Below are positions 39,045 to 52,600 of a DNA stretch of 64,000 bases, in pieces. The DNA is taken from the NCBI GenBank assembly GCA_002104905.1, contig MCFE01000242.1:1-64000 (forward strand). Reading direction: 5' to 3'. This stretch comes from Basidiobolus meristosporus CBS 931.73 (taxonomy: Eukaryota; Fungi; Basidiobolomycota). Each line of letters begins with the position of its first letter. Position 1 is the stretch's first letter. The notes under the pieces are model-generated. The model had not been told where the DNA came from. It did not search any database and was given only the letters and a program-made list of their open reading frames with translations. Both the position numbers and the translations under genes were made by a program.

Positions 39045-40744
39045 ATGGAAGACCCGAAGAAAGTTGAACATTTCGATGTGGAGTTGGACCAGGCCGCTCC
39101 CTTGGTCACCCAGAGCGAGCTACGCGCGTGGTACAGTTACTCGTGGGCGGTAAGGGCTTTGTAGGAATACTCGGTTCTTTAAAGTGTTTGAACTCATCCT
39201 GTTTTCTTAGATTGAGCCCTTCTCTGTCTCGGCCATGTCCGTTTTTATTCCTCTGATTCTTGAGTCGCTTGCTGCAGAGGCTGGATTGCAACAAGATTTG
39301 GTTTCGCCATGTGATACCTCCAAACCTGACTACGTGTGTGTGGTGAAATTCGGCAATGGATACATCGACACCAACACCTATTCTTTATATATACGTTCGT
39401 TCGCCGTTGCTGCCCAGGCTGTAGTGTTCATCAGCTGCGGCGCCATCGCTGATCATGGCAGTAAGTTGCTTCTCACAATTGCAGTTCTTGGATGACATGC
39501 TGATGGTGTTTACTCAGATTGGAGAAAGATCATGCTGCTCTTCTTCGGTATCTTGGGTTCGATTTCCGGAATCACTATGCTGGCTGCATACAAGCCTGAG
39601 CTCTACTGGGTTGTGGCCCTGACCAGCAGTGTAGCCACCATCTGCTTTGGTGCCTCTTTTCTGTTCTACTCTGCATACATCCCCACTCTCACTCGGAACC
39701 ACCAAGAGGTAGTCGAGGCACGTGCCAGCGGCGATCAAACCGAATACCACGAAGCCTCAGAGCGCATTGCCAACGGGATTTCTGGGAAGAGTATGGCTTG
39801 GGGCTACTTGGCTGGCGTGTTGGTTTTGATCATCGGGGCAATCATTGTGTACTTCTCAGGGAGCACTGTCTTTAGGTATGTTGTAGTTGCGTAAGGATGC
39901 AAGCAGAGGACGGTGACTGACTCCATTTCCTTACTTTAGTATGCAAATCGCCTGCGCATTCAGCAGTTTGTGGTGGCTGGTTTTCTGCTATCCACCTATG
40001 AAATGGCTCAAGCCTCGTCCAGGACCCCCATTGCCCAAGGGCGAGTCCTACCTGTTTTATTCGTGGAAAAAGGTCTTCAAAACCCTGTGCCATATTCCCA
40101 AGTTGGGCCAAATCTTCTTGTTCCTTCTGTGCTGGTTCTTCGTCTCCGACGCCATCAATACCATCACATCCGTCGCCATTCTTTTTGCCAAAACAACCCT
40201 CGGGATGAACTACGTCGAGCTTCTCATCGCTGGTGTAGTGGTGCCCCTTTGCGCTGGCGTTGGTAACATGATGTGGCTGTTTATTCAGCGCAAACTCCAC
40301 CTATCCACCAAGAAGATGATCATCATCATCATTTCGCTCTACATCCTATTGCCAGTCTACGGTCTGTTAGGTTTCGTGGCGCCATTTGGATTGAAGCATA
40401 AATTCGAGGCATGGATCGTGTGTGTCTGGATTGGGCTCCTTTTGGGAGCCATTCAATCCTACTGCCGCGTGATGTTCTCAGAGCTTATCCCCAAGGGAAT
40501 GGAGAATGAGCTCTTCAGTCTGTACCAAATCACCGATAAGGGATCAGCTTGGATTGGTCCCTTGATCACCGGTGCCATCACCGATGCTACCAAGGATTTG
40601 CGTTACTCGTTTTACCCACTTCTTGGTATGCTATTCTTCCCACTCCTGGTGATTTTCACCGTCAATGTGGCCAAGGGCAAGGCCCAGGCGAGACAATTCG
40701 CTGGCGACAAACCGACAAACACCCCTTCATTCGAAGAACAGTAA
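39045..40744 (+). CDS. ATG22: Vacuolar amino-acid efflux MFS transporter Atg22, multi-exon
   Basis: ELRAWYSYSWA; VVFISCGAIADHG; FLLCWFFVSDAINT; QSYCRVMFSELIPKGMENELFSLYQITDKGSAWIGP. Confidence 0.92.
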
Positions 40745-42202: not shown

Positions 42203-42640
42203 GTCTGGGGATATTCTGTAGTCCAATTCAGACGACAGTAGAATCTCATGTCTCTAACACTTGTTGCAGTCATAAATAGACCAGCAAGTGAAATTACTTG
42301 TAAACAAATGCCACACGAGTCAATAGAATAAACCATTTGATTGAATAGCTCTCACTCGTATGTCCGACAACCCCAGTTAGACCGAGGCAAAAAGGTATGA
42401 GAAACAGGCATAAAGAAGGGACGTTTATCTATACAAAATTTAGGACAATTTACATTGCTGGATAAATACTATAATCGCCAGCCACGTCTGGACAACGTTT
42501 CGAAAATAGATTTTTACCATGATGGACGATATGCTTGTGGGCAGCCAAGAGACCGTAGGGTTATGATGGGAAATGGTAGGGGACACGAAAAATCCAATTC
42601 TTTTGGGTGCTAAACGATAATGAAGGAGCGGAGGCGAGTG

Positions 42641-44562
42641 CTACGTTTCCGCAAATACTCTACTCCGGAAGTCATCGACATTCACTACGCTTTCGGTTTT
42701 GTTCGCGTATTCCGCAGCGGTCACATAGACGTACGAATCTGTTTTTTTAGAGTGGTTAGTGCGAAGATCGCTGCCGCGTGTCACTTTTCACAACACAATA
42801 CCCAGCATTTCATCCGCGTCGCTAGACCCATTCAATGGTCCTCCGGCGGCGATGGCTTCTACAAATCTACGTACTAGGCCATATTCACCACAGTACCGTT
42901 CTGAGGACTATCTTAGTAATGAGCCTGCAACGACAGAATGATCGGTAACCAACCATTGAATACATCTCCTCCACGAAACACATCTGGCCGGATGATCTCG
43001 CTTCGACGCGTGAGAAAGTTGAACACTCGAACTATTTGCCCGTCTCCATCAAGCTCGCCAAGATTCCCGAAAATCCTGGTGCGCCGAGGAAGGACATTTT
43101 CAGGACATGCAATGAGCGTGATGCTACAGGTTTTGTCCCCGTCAAACTCCATATTAATATTCTGCTTGGAGTAAATGGTTATGTTCACCCATGCAATAGC
43201 GTATGCTGCAAACTACCTGATGCCCATTTTCTTCGGAGGGGGAGTTCACGGCAGATGGTTGTGCCGCATCTAAAACATGTCCATGGGTGAGCGATGCACA
43301 GCTTGGCGAGGGGAGTGCCACAAACCTGAAGTGATCAGTGAGAGGATGCCGTTTTCGTCTTCCGTTTGGTTGGGAAGTGTTGTGGGTGTTGTAGTGCGGG
43401 TGATGGGGGAATCGTGGGGTACAAAGGAGCTACTCACACGTAGCATTGGTTAAAATACATCACGTTTCTATAGCAATACTAAAGGCTAGATACTTGTTGT
43501 CAAGCTGGCTGGGTTGCGAGAAAAAGCACCCGAACGAGCTGATGATGCGACATCTCCGCCCCATAAACCATGCCACCAAATCTACATCCGACAGACTATT
43601 GGCAAGCATAGAGCTAGACTCCCTCCTATATTTTCGGGAAAATATTCCTGAATCCTGTTGCTTAGGTTAAAACTACCATCCTTCAAGGTGATGGGTACGG
43701 GGGGTTCCTTACGGCGCATTGTAATCGAAATGCTCCAAGTGGAGCAACATGCTGGATATTCATGACTTCTCCGATGGTTCCAGAGTCAATGATGCGTTTG
43801 ATGGTAAGGTTGTATGCGGAGTAACGCAGAGTATTTCCCATGGCAAAGATCACCTATGACCTTTCTTAATGACAATTGACGAACCGGTTTTGGCAGTAGG
43901 GATTTACCTGATTGCGAAGTGCAGAATCTGCCAATCTCTTACACGTCTGCAAACTTAAGGTAACCGGGGATTCTAGCAGAATGTGGTAGCGTTTCTCCGC
44001 AAAAACTTCTCGACAGAACATACGGCCTTTTAGACAGTTGAAACAGAAAATCTTTGCAAAGTGCTACGCACCGACTATATGCTTGTCTCTTAGTCTGTCA
44101 CCGACCGAGGTGATTATCACTGCATCTGCGAGTTTCGGTTTGGAGGATAGCTGGTGAGGGATTAGCTGGCGCTTCCTTTTGTACCATATGAGATATTGGT
44201 TCACCTCTCTCCAATCTGAGAAAGTCATTTCAGGAGGGATGGCATGGCGCTACGGAATTCATTCATAAGTCCAGGAAAACTGCTGCCTGTCTGCATATCA
44301 TACCTGCGCTAAATTGTACCGACGGAAATCCGTGGGACAAGCCAAAGCCACTAATTTCATGAGGTGCTGGTTCTGAAGAGCAAAGCTTGCACAAAGCGAG
44401 CCCCTGTTGCAAGGAACGACAAAGGATTTTAGTGGGTATGACTAAACTGTTCATGGCAAACCTGGCCCACTTTCAGCCTAACCACCAACCTATTTCCAGC
44501 CCCAACAACGCATACACTTATTGCTCTACTACTACTTGGAGGCGTGTTGGGGGCAGGGGCAT
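42641..44562 (-). CDS. GFO/IDH/MocA-family (NAD-binding Rossmann) oxidoreductase-like protein of ~11-12 small exons, with catalytic motifs substituted
   Basis: Spliced translation: ISVCVVGAGNR|GSLCASFAL..|RHAIPPEMTFSDWRE|LSSKPKLADAVII..YHILLESP..|VIFAMGNTLRYSAYN..IIDSGTIGEVMNIQH..|..NSLSDVDLVAWFMG..IISSFG..|NINMEF..RRTRIFG..|..GEYGLVRRFVEAI..|SYVYVTAAE..*. Start codon unresolved. Confidence 0.85.
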
Positions 44563-45012
44563 TGGAATAAGCCGATTGGCTTGAGGGGAATGTATAAGAT
44601 GGCTCCAGTTTGAATGTACAGGTGATACAAAGCAGGCAGTGCTTTGCAGAAGTTCAAAATGGAAGTGGGTCTAACGTAATAAATCAGAATAGGACCAGTA
44701 GTCAAGTAAACGAAACAAAAAATTCAATATTTAAAAGATAAGCCTTTAAGTTGTGACTCGTTGTTAATAAAACTACATGCGCGGTGATTCTCAACTAATC
44801 ACAACAAGGTGGGTGATGGAATATCAGTCATAAATCATCGGTAAATTGAGGCCAACAATCTCTAGATTCCCAATGGCTAGGTAGACTCGTGATGAAGATC
44901 TAGAGTTCCCTGGGACATTCCACATAGAGCATTCGAAACATAGGACACAATATTCATTGAGTAGATACATCGAACAAACAATTTCAGCCGTTTCAGAAGA
45001 TGGGTTCATGAG

Positions 45013-47588
45013 TTATGGAATATGTGAGCGGCAATCCCGAGCTATATGACCAGCCTAGAACAATGGTGTAAGGTTAGTGAAGGCTGCATTTCGTCACAGG
45101 CAGTAATACGTACATTGCCGCATCGAAAGCATCCCACGGGCTCTTGTGAGCTGGGCACATCCATGCGGCTGTAAGTGTAGCTTCGAGTTCGACGATAGCT
45201 CTCGAAAGCATCCCCTGATCGCCTGTTTCGCTCACCGTGGCCAAGTCCGGAATACTTCACATCGCCAATAGGGTGGGGCTCGTGTAAGTTACGACTAGAT
45301 GGTTTAGATCCTGACTGCTCGTCCCAGCCTAAAAGAACAAATTAGCTGTACGGTATCAATGAAGGTGCTAACCATTCGTCTTACCTAGCTTCTGAAGCAA
45401 CTGGTATCCCACATTGTGCTCGGAAATGGGTGCATCAACTCTAGAACGAGATCTGGAGCGTGATCTTGACTTGGATCGAGATGCAGAGCGTGTATAGCCT
45501 CTTTTGCCATTTCTGTGTCTATTTCGATATGGACTTCTACTCCTACTTCGCCCGCGTCCTCGGCTTCTGCTACGACTTCGACTATAATGGCTGATACGAC
45601 TCCGTCCAGGGTGCTGATAATAGTGTCGGTCCTCTTGATCAGAGACACTGGATGAAGATCGGTTCTGTTTGCCTGAACGATAACTACCTCTGCTGCGACT
45701 GCGACTGCGACTAGACGAGCTGCCACAGGATGAGCGTGATCTTGATCGGTATTTATTTCGACCTCTTGAATAGGAGGCTTCGGTTCGAGAGCGATGGGGG
45801 TCGTGGAGGCTGGGCGACTTTTTCTTGTGAAGCATCTCTTCTGCATTTCGATAATAATCATCGAGTAACCCTAACTTCCAGCCTTCGGAATCGAAGGTAC
45901 CTCTGTGGCTTTGAATCACAGATGTGTCGCCTTCTGTCATTTCCGATAGCTCCTTATAGAATTCATCAACCGCTGTATATGTATCGGAGGGGATGTGTGT
46001 CGGCATAGTAAACGATTTCAACAATGCCACTTTAATAGGAATATACGCGCCGTTCGTAAGCTAGTGATGCAATGATTAGAGGACTCAGCTAGAAATAGCT
46101 CTAGGTAGAACTTACTTGAACTTGAGGTATCATCGAACTGGATGGAAGCTCATAATACTTCTTAGGTGCGATATTGCTCCTCAGTTGAGCGCTTGAGGAC
46201 ACAGGCTGAGTGGCGGCTTCTGGGATATGCGGTCGACGATATGAACCAGCAGAAGGGGCAGCATTGTGAGGCTTGGGTAACGATGGTCTGGTTCCCAAGG
46301 GAAACGGTTGAACCTGGGCAGGAGTGAATCCAGATGACACAGGGAGAGGGCCGTGAGGGATAGGTATTGTTAGGCCACTCCTAAGGGTGTGGATTACAGA
46401 GAGTTCGAAATAGCTTTTGTCTTCCCAGATTGCAAGAACCTATTGATCGTGCTCATTGACTTAAGTTCGACTGATCCTCGAATTAACGCTTCGGTTGATT
46501 CTACTGATGGACTTGTAATCATACCTTCATTACTTTTTCTTTTTGCGCATCAGTTGCATTTGGAATGTAATATGCGGCTCTCAAAATGGAGACTAGGTGC
46601 GGGTACAACGCATCCTTAATCCAGGCCATTCGTCTGCGGATGCTGTCATGGTGTTAACGGTTGGTTTTCAATGTTTTCTACAGTAACTGACTGACCTGTG
46701 AAAAAGCATATCATTGACCAAGTAAAGGATATGCAACCTTGGCTCAAAGTTATCCCGAGTCAGCGACGAATGCAACAGATACTGTGCTAAACAATCAATG
46801 TGCGGCGCGCTGACACAATTGTCAAATATCCAGGACCTCCCATGCTACATATGGCGTGTAAATGGATTGTGCAAGAATCCGGCGCAGATGGTTGGCATTC
46901 TTACTTGGATATGGATCTGTGAGCAATCTTTTATGATTGCCCCTAACAACTCTGAAATTCTCTCTGCTTTACTCGCGCCGAGTAATCGTGATAGATTGTC
47001 AAAAGAAGCAGAGGATTCGACACGCGGGCTAGGCGGAACTTGAGGATTTCCCACATACGAGTGAGGGGTCATGGTAAAATTCGACGCATCTATTTTGTAG
47101 TACTCCAATTAGTAATCACCAAGAGTAAAAACCGCTTAATTATGCGACATACTGTGTTGAGGCTCACCGAAACGCTGCTTAAGCAGCTGGATCTTCCATT
47201 GAAAATAATGAAAGTATTGACCGTCTGGTCGCATAAAACTATACTTTGGATTGCCAAATTGTCTTTGCATAACCTAGTTCGGTGAAGATTTTTCGGGTAT
47301 TGAAATGAATTCATTCGAGCTCACGTTAATCGACTTTCTTTCCGAAACAACAAAATTTCGATGTGTTGTGAACAAGCGTATGTACCATTTGCGCCAAAGC
47401 TGGATTTTTCACAGTCTGTTCAGCCAATTTATCAATGACAAGCAACTCATCGGGATCTGCGATACAAAGCATACAATGCGTTATATTAGATGTCATATCT
47501 GAGCTATATTGATAAAATGCAGCCTACTCTGAGGACAAGGTGGTGTCGGCGTGGGATAGTGTAGATTTCTATCTGGTAGATCCATCAT
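45013..47588 (-). CDS. CHERP-like splicing factor: SURP, CID, RS-rich region, G-patch and C-terminal CCHC zinc knuckle
   Basis: SURP-like ELLVIDKLAEQ; RS tract; G-patch PISEHNVGYQLLQKLGW; DAFESYRRTRSY; CFRCGNAGHIARDC. Confidence 0.8.
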
Positions 47589-47894: not shown

Positions 47895-49399
47895 ATGAGT
47901 AATAATTCAACGTAAGTATACTTCGAAGATGCACAAAAACATCGTATTGACCTGATACTTATGGCTGCAGTCCAAAAGCAAGCGATCTTTCCGAAAGAAA
48001 TGGCGACAGATCAAATGCTTACCTGAAAATTGTCGTGGGGTGCAAGGTATTTGTTGAGAAACAAATGGGGCCCACCGATGTACAGTACCGGAAAGCGGAG
48101 ATATTGTCTGTCCGAGAAGCGTTGGATCACTCAAAAACAGAATATTATGTGCATTACTGCGAATTCAACAAAAGACTCGATGAATGGGTTCCGGCACACC
48201 GCTTAAATCTTGACAAAGAAATAGAATATCCTAAACAGAGAAGGGGAAAACATACACTAAGTGGGCTGGATTCCACGAAGAAGCAGCGCCGAATCTCAAA
48301 GTTGACTCCTCTTAGGGATCGTGAAGGAAAACTGACACCAAGAAGAGAAAATTATTTCGACAGCTCCTTGTTCGACAGCCCAATATCCTCACCTGCAACC
48401 ACCAATGACAAGCTGACCGAAGAAGCAGAGCATGTGGATGATGAGACTGACGAACATAAAGGACAAGCTACAGACACCTTCTCCAAAGAAAAGGAGATCG
48501 AGAAGCTTCGAACATCCGGGTCTATGACTCAATGCGTCAATGAGATTTCGCGTGTAAAGAATCTAAACAAGATCCAAATGGGAATCCATGAGATAGAGGC
48601 TTGGTACTTCTCACCATATCCAGAAGAGTATGCCCATGCAGAATTGATATATATCTGCGAGTTCTGTCTCTCCTACTTTCTTTCGTCGAAATCGTTTACT
48701 CGCCATCGCGCCAAGTGCACCCTTCTCCATCCACCTGGCAACGAAATCTACCGGTACGAGGGGATTTCGTTCTTTGAGATTGACGGGCGCAAGCAAAGAA
48801 CCTATTGCCGCAACTTGTCTCTCCTCTCCAAGATGTTTCTCGATCACAAAACGCTGTATTACGATGTCGATCCTTTCTTGTTCTACATCATGACCAAAAA
48901 TGATGAATACGGGGCACATATCCTCGGATACTTCTCGAAAGAGAAAGAGTCGCTCGAAGGGTATAATCTAGCGTGTATCTTAACCTTACCGCAGCATCAG
49001 CGTATGGGATATGGCAAGCTGCTGATAGCCTTCTCGTATGAACTCTCGAAGATCGAAGGAAGAATCGGCTCTCCTGAAAAGCCGCTGTCCGATCTTGGTT
49101 TGCTAAGTTATCGCGCATACTGGGCAGAGACCATCGTCGAAAAACTAATCGATTTTCGGGGAGAGATCACTCTGGAAGAGCTTTCCCACGCAACTGGAAT
49201 CACTGTCCAAGACATCTTGCACACACTGCAAACGATCGATGCCCTCAAGTACTATCGGGGGCAGCATATTATCTGTTTGAGCACCAAAACAGTGGAGCAG
49301 TACGAACGTAGCAACCAGAAGAAACGACGCAAAATCGATGCCACTGCGCTGAAGTGGACGCCGCCGATCTTTACCCCTGCGCAGCTACGTTATCTCTGA
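47895..49399 (+). CDS. ESA1: MYST histone acetyltransferase Esa1/Tip60, 2 exons
   Basis: Tudor-knot YYVHYCEFNKRLDEWV; WYFSPYPEEY; C2HC finger; YNLACILTLPQHQRMGYGKLLI; GSPEKPLSDLGLLSY. Confidence 0.97.
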
Positions 49400-49684: not shown

Positions 49685-52600
49685 CTAGCCTTCAAGCTTG
49701 AAAGGGTTTTGTGAGTGCTTCAGAAGCTCCAGAGAAGACTGGCGAAGTAGCTCTAGAAGTTGTGGGATTTTCTTGGATTTCACAAACTCTCTGTATAGCG
49801 CGTTTTTGTCATCTGCCACGATGTTCACGATGTCCAAACTCTTCTCTAGATTTTCCGGTATCAGGTCCCTGGTCTCATAGAGAACTGTGTGCAGGCGGAA
49901 AACGATCTCGGGAATAAACGTCTCTCGCAATTTGTCGAGTTCGTAATGTCTTCTCTCTTGCTCGATGCTAGGAAGTTCTCGGGCATAGCTACTAGAAAGC
50001 CAATCCGATTCAAGTAGGCGTTGCAAGACTTCTTCGTTTTTCAGAGTAATAGACTTGAAAGAGAAGTTCGTTAGGACAGGCGTCCTTGGATTATCCCTAA
50101 CGTCGAGTTGTAAATACCTTCATCTTATTTCTCCAATCATTAGACTTTTGCATAGCTTGAACTCCTTCACTGTAACCCACAAGTCAGTATACCTGGCCTC
50201 CCAACTGATGGAATATTGGTCATACCTCTTAACTGGCCGCTCGTAGAAAGTCTCGGACCACAAATCGTAGAGCTTGATGCATTCGCAGAAACTTCTATAA
50301 TGCAAATGTTCTTGTACATTACTAACGATAGGGTTGTTCTCGACTTCGTTCTCCAACAGCTCCATCCATTCAGTTAGCAGGAAGTCTTGAGGGAGGCGGC
50401 GAAAAACTTCGTTGGCCCCATTGATTTTCCCGCATACTACAAAGCCAAGAGTAAGTGATTGCTATAGCCTCAGACCAAAATAAACAGCGCTACTTAAGAA
50501 TCTTCGCACAAGAGTGTTGCTCTGTTTTAAGGCCTCTTCGTAATGATAATTCTCAAAAGTAAGCCAATCTAAGGCACTGATCTGAGCTTTATCTTGAGCC
50601 TCCACGGGGTCGCTAATCTTCTTAAGATCAAATGTATCCAAATCGAAATCGGGCAGGTCCTAGAGAGATTGCTATGTGAGCTGATGTTTACATGCCCATT
50701 TGATCGATGAAGTTAATTACATCACGAACAGCTTCTTGGAAAACTTTCTCAACTGTACGGCTGGAGATTTTGGTAACATCCAAGTTGTAACGGTACGCAA
50801 GCTTGATAAGTTCATATCTATCTTGAGCATCGTCTTCGATACCTTGTTACGAAAAAATAACTAAGTGTTTGTCAACTAAAAGAAGTAGATCGCTAACTGG
50901 AAATACCGGCAAGAAAAGTGGAGTATACTTCCACTTGTAGATCCTCTGGCAGCTTGGAGGTGTAGAACGCAACAAGATAGTTCTACGGCAATAAAACTCA
51001 GTAAACACCATGTTGAATATATTAAGTGGCAATTTTCTGCTACGCACCTTGTTAAGTTGAATCAATAGCTCGACATAGCATTTGATAATGTTGTTTGCCT
51101 CAGCAGCAGGTAATTCGATCCCTAGTGTTCTTAGGTAAAGAACCATATGAGTCAGAAAACGAAGAATTCGTGGATCCACTGGAGGCTCCCTGTGATGAAC
51201 GATTAGGAACTGAAAATAGCCACAGATACTACAGAGGAATACATACTCAGAGGTTTGCCATAATCCGGTATGAGCAGTCAAGGTATCGCTCATCTCAATG
51301 ATTAACTCATCGATGCGACTCAAGATAATCATCGTTTGAATATATCTATAAGGATCTTTTGCCAAGGCACTGTGAAGAGAATATGTTAGCTTGGTGCATT
51401 GCTGAATTACTCTACAACATAGTGGCTGGAACCTGAGTGCTTCGTTCGGGCTTTTGGCGATATTCATGAAGATATCCTCTTTTGTCATATGTTCAAAGGC
51501 TGGAATGGGAAGCTCCGCGCTTTCGGTGTTTCTATGGTTCTGTTGAAGATACTTATTTGGGGTGAGTTGAGTCGTTGTGCGTGTAAAACATTGTCCATGG
51601 CGCTACCTGTTCAACTTGGTTTTCAATCAAGGCGTTGTAGTATCCCCAGATATAGTCCTCCCAGCTTTTACACACAGGCAACAGCTAGACATGAAAATTA
51701 GCATATGTTTCGATGCCCTTGAAAGCAAATTACTAACATTTTCAACATCTCCGCAGAGTGCTGCATACATTGCACGCTCGTAGACATCCAGGCTCTCCTT
51801 TTCGTTCGAGTGACTTGTTAGTAAAATAGGTGACCCTTTATGTTGCACTGAAGTCTAAGTGTTACCTCTTTGGCTAGCTGATAGCAAGTTCCTTTCCAAA
51901 GTCCTCTATTAACATTTCCGCGAGGTTCTAGCGCCTCAATACCAACAGGAACATCGTCACCTATTGGATGATTGTGAAAGTTGTTCAGTGCCATAAAATT
52001 GCAACCATCTGGGGCGTATATGGTTACCAAGGAGTGGGTCATCGTGATAAACACCACCGCTGATGCTTGCAGCTCTCCAGGGTTGATCACTTTCACGGCA
52101 TAGATCAGTAGCATCCTCAATACGACCACGTCGGATGTATTCATACAGTGTTCGAACTAAGCTTTTCTCATACATCTATACAAGTAAAACAAGAATGAGT
52201 AACCTCCACTACAACTCTCCAAAGAATGAAGGACTACATTATCCTCAAGCGCTAGCTCTTTGTTCTGACGATTTGGAGCATCAGGGTCAATCTCGGTTAC
52301 GAGATTCTCATTTCTTGAATGCATGAAAGAAGACCCAAGCTTGCTCTTACTCCCAATGCATTTCCCCGTATGGAACCAGTAGCCACGTCGTGTTTCAACT
52401 GGCTGAAAGGCTGGGGCAATATCCTCGAGCCAACTTCTAACAATCTAGCTTGGTGGTTTAGTAAACAAACACAAGAACGGTAAAACTCGGCGTGTACGAA
52501 CATTATTCTCGGATATTTCGCGATTATTTCGAAAAAGGTTTTGTACAAGTTTAAAGTCGGGTATGTATGAATTTTCTACATCGGGAACTTCCAGACCTTC

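Follow-up and report, generated by a model that had tools for sequence, protein, structure and literature searches.

What becomes of a GFO/IDH/MocA gene once its catalytic residues are gone: does it persist as a working protein of another kind, or does it decay? The question is raised by a locus on the minus strand of contig MCFE01000242.1 of the fungus Basidiobolus meristosporus CBS 931.73 (assembly GCA_002104905.1), which occupies positions 42641-44562 of the window that we analysed, a stretch of 64,000 nucleotides. A first-pass annotation, made from the letters alone, had proposed there a hidden gene of many small exons whose product looked like a Gal80-style pseudoenzyme. We find that the locus is a genuine 12-exon GFO/IDH/MocA gene. 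Judging from the residues that it has lost, its product is likely a 'dead enzyme', and we favour, with moderate confidence, the view that the gene is an intact non-catalytic paralog in a Basidiobolus-specific expansion and that a break in the reading frame of exon 1 is an error of the assembly.

The pieces of the gene were read from a three-frame translation of the minus strand over 42400-44800. When the longest exon open reading frame (ORF; 91 residues) was compared with 1.84 billion representative proteins, it matched at 99% identity a protein called P0001 hereafter (GenBank ORX93248.1, K493DRAFT_408479, 380 residues, labelled 'hypothetical protein'). The gene is thus not hidden but already public in an N-terminally shortened form. 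P0001 threads exactly onto 11 exons (exons 2-12), and their introns are all GT..AG and 53-66 nucleotides (nt) long. The GenBank coding sequence (CDS) comprises these exons only and takes an internal methionine at 44360 as its start; because it begins inside exon 2, the predicted protein lacks strand beta1 and the glycine-rich loop. Both are encoded upstream. The N-termini of two paralogs, P0004 and P0005, align by tblastn to 44551-44489, GAGNR is found at 44503-44490 with its arginine codon completed at 44403, and in translation GAGNR plus the following glycine spans 44503-44490 and 44403-44400. Intron 1 is identical in codon and phase to that of six intron-rich paralogs, exon 2 measures 100 nt in the gene and in all six of them, and ten further intron positions are common to paralogs: six coincide in column and phase of the alignment, and the remaining four lie no more than a few columns away. 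The many-exon structure, the preserved splice phases and the position of the dinucleotide-binding GAGNRG, all described in the first-pass annotation, are therefore correct.

The fold was also as had been claimed. All whole-protein analyses (searches, fold prediction and tree) used the public P0001, which is short by the first ~43 residues. P0001 matches Pfam PF01408 (GFO_IDH_MocA) at 34.3 bits, over a cut-off of 24, across profile positions 28-119 of 120. AlphaFold2, supplied with P0001 and a 58-sequence alignment, predicted a confident two-domain GFO fold with a predicted local distance difference test score (pLDDT) of 80.6 and a predicted template modelling (TM) score of 0.79. Only three segments have low confidence: residues 141-153, where the HSYVRGNW loop of the family is lost, residues 189-240, a linker rich in threonine, proline and serine (T/P/S; pLDDT below 50 over 197-240), and residues 311-314. 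The Pfam models of C-terminal domains did not match P0001; the C-terminal alpha/beta domain is present in the AlphaFold2 model, and Foldseek aligns ~380-410 columns to GFO enzymes. The best Foldseek matches are a cis-4,5-dihydrodiol phthalate dehydrogenase, YjhC, RgNanOx and inositol dehydrogenases, with expectation values (E) of ~1e-17 to 1e-15 and TM scores of ~0.6-0.7. Scans of single exons against Pfam and the PDB were uninformative as the exons are too short, except for exon 5 (GFO_IDH_MocA, E 0.004). Matches of the 91-residue exon to the very long repeat proteins P0002, P0003 and P0007, in which its D-G-D-G segment matches in multiple stretches, were rejected as chance or low-complexity similarity.

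In order to determine which residues have been lost, we compared P0001 with a canonical reference set of 49 relatives that have the EKP motif, 33 residues being invariant in all 49. The EKP lysine, the beta4 histidine, the HSYVRGNW loop, the K-x-C-H-D-x-D motif, five cysteines and the GHGGGD motif are 90-100% conserved in these relatives, mostly 100%; four of the cysteines are invariant and one is present in 90% of the members. P0001 lacks 18 of the 33 invariant residues and is the most stripped of the nine Basidiobolus proteins described below. The catalytic lysine and histidine, each 100% conserved in the canonical relatives, are both replaced (ESP and NSLSDVD, respectively), and the five cysteines, the HSYVRGNW loop and GHGGGD are all replaced or deleted. 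The changes, in P0001 numbering, are H55R, G66R, K73S, E130A, H136R, R143G, K159N and H162S, followed by the loss of all the cysteines and by H317R, D321E, H351Y and R361N. Retained in the gene are GxGxxG, the glutamate and proline of EKP, and LRY. Translation and comparison with the 49 relatives thus confirm three replacements that had been read from the sequence, namely those of the EKP lysine (in YHILLESP), of the KSCHD histidine motif and of the Cys-rich insert, which has given way to the T/P/S-rich linker. The proposal that the catalytic loss is specific holds in part: lysine, histidine and Cys cluster are gone while fold residues are kept, but the lysine is missing from all nine Basidiobolus proteins and not from this one alone.

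These nine proteins, five from B. meristosporus and four from B. ranarum, were delimited by a profile search built from the four closest proteins; below them, after a fall in score from 540 to 325 bits, come bacterial and metagenomic proteins. In the tree they form a monophyletic clade (support 100/100) with four B. meristosporus/B. ranarum ortholog pairs. The EKP motif has lost its lysine in 9/9, becoming ENP in six proteins, EEP in two and ESP in P0001. A word-based search, with the limits of that method, turned up no Basidiobolus copy of the canonical (EKP) type. The six ENP paralogs (P0004/P0100, P0103/P0101 and P0104/P0102, one of them named 'StrI' by similarity) have intron positions in common with P0001, P0004 and P0100 sharing most of them. 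Like P0001 they have lost the catalytic lysine, the HSYVRGNW loop and HGGGD, but they evolve more slowly and keep K-N-x-H-D-I-D, including the histidine, and the three cysteines of R-C-x2-C-x5-C from the Cys cluster. P0001, P0086 and P0005 have lost these too. P0086 (a B. meristosporus 'NAD(P)-binding protein' found on two contigs) and P0005 (B. ranarum KAK9762655.1) are ~42% identical to P0001 and have likewise lost the EKP lysine and the catalytic histidine. They differ in having 3 exons instead of 12, in keeping the lysine of K-N-x-x and part of the insert, and in that each species has an ortholog and the start is intact and in frame, whereas P0001 is apparently unpaired and has lost more residues. 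P0001 is weakly sister to P0086/P0005 (82/69), a grouping that is supported by shared derived states such as the change of a family-invariant cysteine to valine in all three (alignment A4, column 308).

Is the gene maintained by selection? The four other lineages of the clade show between species a proportion of nonsynonymous differences (pN) of 0.09-0.13 against a saturated synonymous proportion (pS) of 0.74-0.82; the species split is therefore old and the clade strongly purified by selection. The P0001 lineage predates the B. meristosporus/B. ranarum split. We applied to it three indirect constraint tests, carried out exon by exon with intron-split codons excluded. In the first, the 375 whole codons of P0001 contain no stop, whereas 40 stops are expected per unit of neutral divergence; the probability of such a frame reaches 0.05 only when neutral drift amounts to less than ~0.075 substitutions per site. 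In the second, P0001 retains 63% of the positions that do not vary among the six ENP paralogs but 25% of those that do (Fisher p = 2e-13); the same measure gives 62% for P0086 and 61% for P0005, and P0001 further retains 82 of 98 sites invariant in all eight other clade proteins. In the third, it retains 23 of 29 sites that are invariant in those eight but rare (<30%) in the canonical family, for example in K-T-C, L-T-R-R, R-P and the N-x-D-D tail. Because these sites are conserved only in the Basidiobolus clade, they probably came under constraint on the clade stem, either when the lysine was lost or afterwards. That P0001 has kept them speaks for a function common to the clade and different from the canonical one. 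Indirect tests thus point to purifying selection on P0001 for most of its history, since its frame is open, its 11 introns are canonical and occupy ancestral positions, and its pattern of constraint matches that of selected paralogs; a very recent inactivation would still be compatible with these tests. The earlier suggestion of selection on a non-catalytic role is sustained for the selection, over the long term and by these indirect tests; the loss of catalysis is read from the residues.

Taken together, the residues suggest a stepwise history. The Basidiobolus expansion belongs to a GFO/IDH/MocA subfamily whose canonical members have EKP, KSCHDxD, HGGGD and a five-Cys cluster. The ancestor of the clade lost the catalytic lysine; P0001, P0086 and P0005 then lost the catalytic histidine, the Cys cluster and further invariant residues. 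P0001 still has the two-domain fold, the glycine-rich loop and ~80% of the newly invariant clade positions. We infer that the product performs no dehydrogenase catalysis and acts through binding; as a pseudoenzyme it would bind a ligand or dinucleotide, or serve as a dimeric scaffold, with no hydride transfer. The paralogs form a graded series, from loss of the lysine to loss of the histidine and Cys cluster, which could show how a dehydrogenase becomes a binding protein step by step. One may go further and imagine a set of GFO-fold regulators proper to the genus, five per genome, derived from a metal-cluster dehydrogenase and sensing sugars or NAD(P)(H) in a Gal80-like control, with P0001 as the most specialised, fully non-catalytic member, whose disordered T/P/S linker would be a new site of interaction or modification; we regard this extension as speculative and improbable.

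The state of exon 1 is central to the question of intactness. Relative to the Rossmann-loop exon, the ATG at 44562 lies in the +1 frame, and its assembled frame ends after 14 codons at TAA 44520-44518; the nearest ATG is indeed one base out of frame beside a C5 run, as had been noticed. Exon 1 has 73 nt (3n+1), compared with 59-68 nt, always 3n+2, in all six intron-rich paralogs, so exactly one base is missing between the ATG and the conserved part. One extra base anywhere in 44559-44521 restores a paralog-like start (M-P...). A 19-nt internal 'intron' in exon 1 that would restore the frame was dismissed because it is much too short. The errors that typically remain in PacBio sequence are homopolymer under-calls. 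The break adjoins C4 and C5 runs, and the CBS 931.73 genome was sequenced with PacBio only (PMC7466969). We infer that the break is most simply such an under-call; the ORX93248.1 model is probably N-terminally short owing to a homopolymer indel, and the real protein would begin at ATG 44562, ~43 residues upstream of the GenBank start. As a gauge of the indel rate, the duplicated loci L002 and L003 differ by 7 indels in 7 kb, four of them clustered at a contig end, which makes this weak evidence. Features of a pseudogene amount to one single-base break, in exon 1 by the homopolymers, with 0 stops in 375 whole codons and 11/11 introns GT..AG.

Several observations weigh against the view of an intact non-catalytic paralog. 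The assembled sequence offers the Rossmann exon no in-frame ATG, and genuine slippage mutations favour homopolymer runs just as sequencing errors do. P0001 is a lone branch and the longest terminal one of the tree (0.95). Among annotated B. ranarum proteins it has no ortholog, which may reflect loss in the sister species, and a word search with the 91-residue exon ORF found no fragments in other Basidiobolus assemblies or transcripts. Direct estimation of the ratio of nonsynonymous to synonymous substitution rates is impossible for P0001, because no ortholog turned up and synonymous sites are saturated against every paralog. Finally, the acidic residue of beta2 is a cysteine (serine in the paralogs) and the beta4 histidine an arginine, which makes cofactor binding doubtful and the NAD(P) sensing suggested by the first-pass annotation a conjecture; the beta2 cysteine could suit NADP or the absence of any cofactor.

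Some of these points would be expected of a nascent pseudogene, in which the one-base deletion is real and recent, the full protein is no longer made and decay has just begun. The data on the frame break fit an assembly error and a very recent pseudogenisation alike: the break is present in the sole available assembly, where it forced the Joint Genome Institute (JGI) model to an internal methionine start, and a dispensable lineage would fit both the missing B. ranarum ortholog and the fact that P0001 is the most degenerate and fastest-evolving copy. Yet there is a single lesion in ~1.3 kb of CDS and 22 splice sites, and its homopolymer context is typical of PacBio errors. The open frame also caps any neutral drift at less than ~0.075 substitutions per site, and in its constraint pattern P0001 cannot be told apart from the selected paralogs. 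We consider a nascent pseudogene unlikely, though it is the rival to be taken most seriously.

Alternatively, the frameshift may be real and the gene still used, from another start. Translation would begin either at Met 44360, as in the GenBank model, giving a protein without beta1 and GxGxxG, or at a CTG upstream, and the product would in either case be a cofactor-free scaffold like human GFOD1, itself a GFO-fold protein that binds no cofactor (PMC11612644). The CTG, at 44608-44606 on the minus strand, is in frame with the Rossmann exon and has an A at -3 and a G at +4; no stop separates it from GAGNR, and it may serve as a near-cognate start. A Rossmann domain is, however, unlikely to fold when its first strand is missing, and two short ORFs precede the internal methionine. 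Moreover, the beta1 and GAGNR of exon 1 are still intact, similar to those of the paralogs and in frame with exon 2, which is unexpected if exon 1 has long been untranslated. This alternative seems to us distinctly improbable. The idea that P0001 has remained an enzyme whose catalytic residues have moved or changed, with a non-redox activity or as a dehydrogenase that uses another base, can draw on the retained fold, glycine-rich loop, EKP glutamate and proline and LRY, on the six ENP paralogs that retain the histidine and three cysteines, and on passages in reviews that describe migrated catalytic residues in some 'pseudoenzymes' (PMC10211241), but it is very improbable, as P0001 has lost the lysine, the histidine and the lysine preceding it, Glu130, His136, Arg143, all five cysteines and the HGGGD histidine, and the loops round the active site are predicted to be disordered.

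The features of the gene, for which we retain the reading of an intact non-catalytic paralog, are collected in Table 1.

Table 1. Exons, first intron and homopolymer runs of the gene for P0001 (positions in the window).
Feature	Position	Strand	Length	Content
Exon 1	44490..44562	-	73 nt	Outside the GenBank model; putative ancestral ATG 44562-44560, N-terminal tail, beta1, GAGNR of the Rossmann loop
C4 run and C5 run	44559-44556 and 44553-44549	-		Likeliest positions of the missing base
Intron 1	44404..44489	-	86 nt	GT..AG; phase 2, splits the Arg codon of GAGNR-G
Exon 2	44304..44403	-	100 nt	GenBank CDS begins within, ATG 44360
Exon 3	44205..44249	-	45 nt	
Exon 4	44072..44150	-	79 nt	beta4 region; family-invariant His replaced by Arg
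Exon 5	43908..44005	-	98 nt	YHILLESP; EKP Lys replaced by Ser (ESP 43973-43965)
Exon 6	43713..43853	-	141 nt	Start of C-terminal domain; LRY retained, HSYVRGNW loop gone
Exon 7	43494..43654	-	161 nt	NSLSDVD (43600-43580) for KSCHDID; Lys and His both gone
Exon 8, intron 8 and exon 9	43429-43326 (exon 8), 43269-43217 (exon 9)	-		T/P/S-rich linker in place of the Cys-cluster insert; predicted disordered
Exon 10	42954..43161	-	208 nt	Core beta-sheet of C-terminal domain; clade motifs K-T-C, TRIFG.LGEL, FLTRRSEIIRP
Exon 11	42802..42900	-	99 nt	HGGGD replaced by R-Y-C-G-E-Y-G
Exon 12	42641..42738	-	95 nt + stop	TAG stop 42643-42641; AAE and clade tail N-x-D-D-F-R retained

Intron 3 (44151-44204, minus strand) is 54 nt long, in frame and stop-free, and its retention would add 18 residues. 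The neighbours of the gene are ordinary housekeeping genes and give no functional hint: an ATG22 vacuolar effluxer (39941-40741, plus strand), the RS-rich part of a Surp/CID protein (45371-46030, minus strand), a MYST/Esa1-type histone acetyltransferase with a Tudor-knot (48035-49396, plus strand), Nup84/107 (50850-51488, minus strand) and a SAP/Tho1 protein.

Three observations concern the paralogs. The P0086/P0005 lineage (L002:3001-4405 and L004:4726-6135) has 2 introns, compared with 8-13 elsewhere, the outcome of massive intron loss or of replacement by a retro-copy. In the gene for P0004 (ORX80095.1, MCFE01000757.1), the 198-nt 'intron 2' of the JGI model (L005:3252-3449) holds an intact 45-nt exon with AG/GT flanks, which encodes R-H-N-I-A-P-E-M-I-F-S-S-W-R-N and is homologous to exon 3 of the other intron-rich paralogs; ORX80095.1 is thus probably short by 15 residues through an exon skipped in annotation. 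The gene for P0086 and its flanks, on MCFE01000140.1 (L002) and MCFE01000060.1 (L003), are ~99.7% identical, with 21 substitutions and 7 indels in 7 kb, and these contigs are either haplotigs or a very recent segmental duplication. The four small indels near one contig end fall within the 5' end of a neighbouring sugar-transporter gene or immediately before it; the models of this gene have 494 and 459 residues.

How does P0001 compare with known systems? Its best matches outside Basidiobolus are canonical members of the Cys-cluster subfamily, found in bacteria such as Nonomuraea and Paenibacillus, in chytrids (KAJ3191274.1, KAI9362965.1) and in an oomycete (OQR83703.1). They share with P0001 a collinear two-domain architecture over the full length at 24-34% identity, but keep in 49/49 the EKP, KxCHDxD, five-Cys and HGGGD features that are all replaced in P0001. 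As canonical relatives are thus not confined to bacteria, there is no need to invoke a recent transfer from them; this possibility was considered and found unsupported, the gene having 11 introns, mostly at paralog positions. All NCBIfam matches fell far below their cut-offs, and these searches showed no functionally characterised member of the subfamily.

The nearest solved structures are Escherichia coli YjhC (6o15), Ruminococcus gnavus RgNanOx (6z3b, 6z3c) and a cis-4,5-dihydrodiol phthalate dehydrogenase (7x1x), with a sequence-profile E of 6.5e-21 for YjhC/RgNanOx and a Foldseek E of 2e-17 at a TM score of ~0.65. They differ from P0001 in being active NAD enzymes with EKP and the histidine; they are 13-15% identical to it and lack the insert.

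Yeast Gal80 (3btu, 3v2u), the precedent that the first-pass annotation had named, resembles the predicted role of P0001 in that a GFO/IDH/MocA fold is used as a non-catalytic regulator. It is remote by sequence profile (E 2.8e-8, rank ~56, compared with 6.5e-21 for YjhC/RgNanOx) and the Foldseek matches listed, which reach rank 50, do not include it; Gal80 is therefore an analogy and not a relative, and a special kinship is not supported. A Pfam Gal80p_C-like match was sub-threshold in one exon (E 0.03; 14.9 bits, where 29 are required), and the whole of P0001 gave no match to this model. We know of no Gal4- or Gal3-type partner for P0001.

Human GFOD1 and GFOD2 (8y7p) have been described as GFO-fold pseudoenzymes that act via protein binding, GFOD1 appearing at Foldseek rank 48. 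They are vertebrate proteins of independent origin, and the cofactor residues are lost in GFOD1, whereas GxGxxG is kept in the Basidiobolus gene. The present finding opens no long-standing question, and P0001 was already public in truncated form. As an extreme new member of the GFO-fold pseudoenzymes, it would add a lineage-specific, multi-copy case to the short list so far made up of Gal80 and GFOD1/2.

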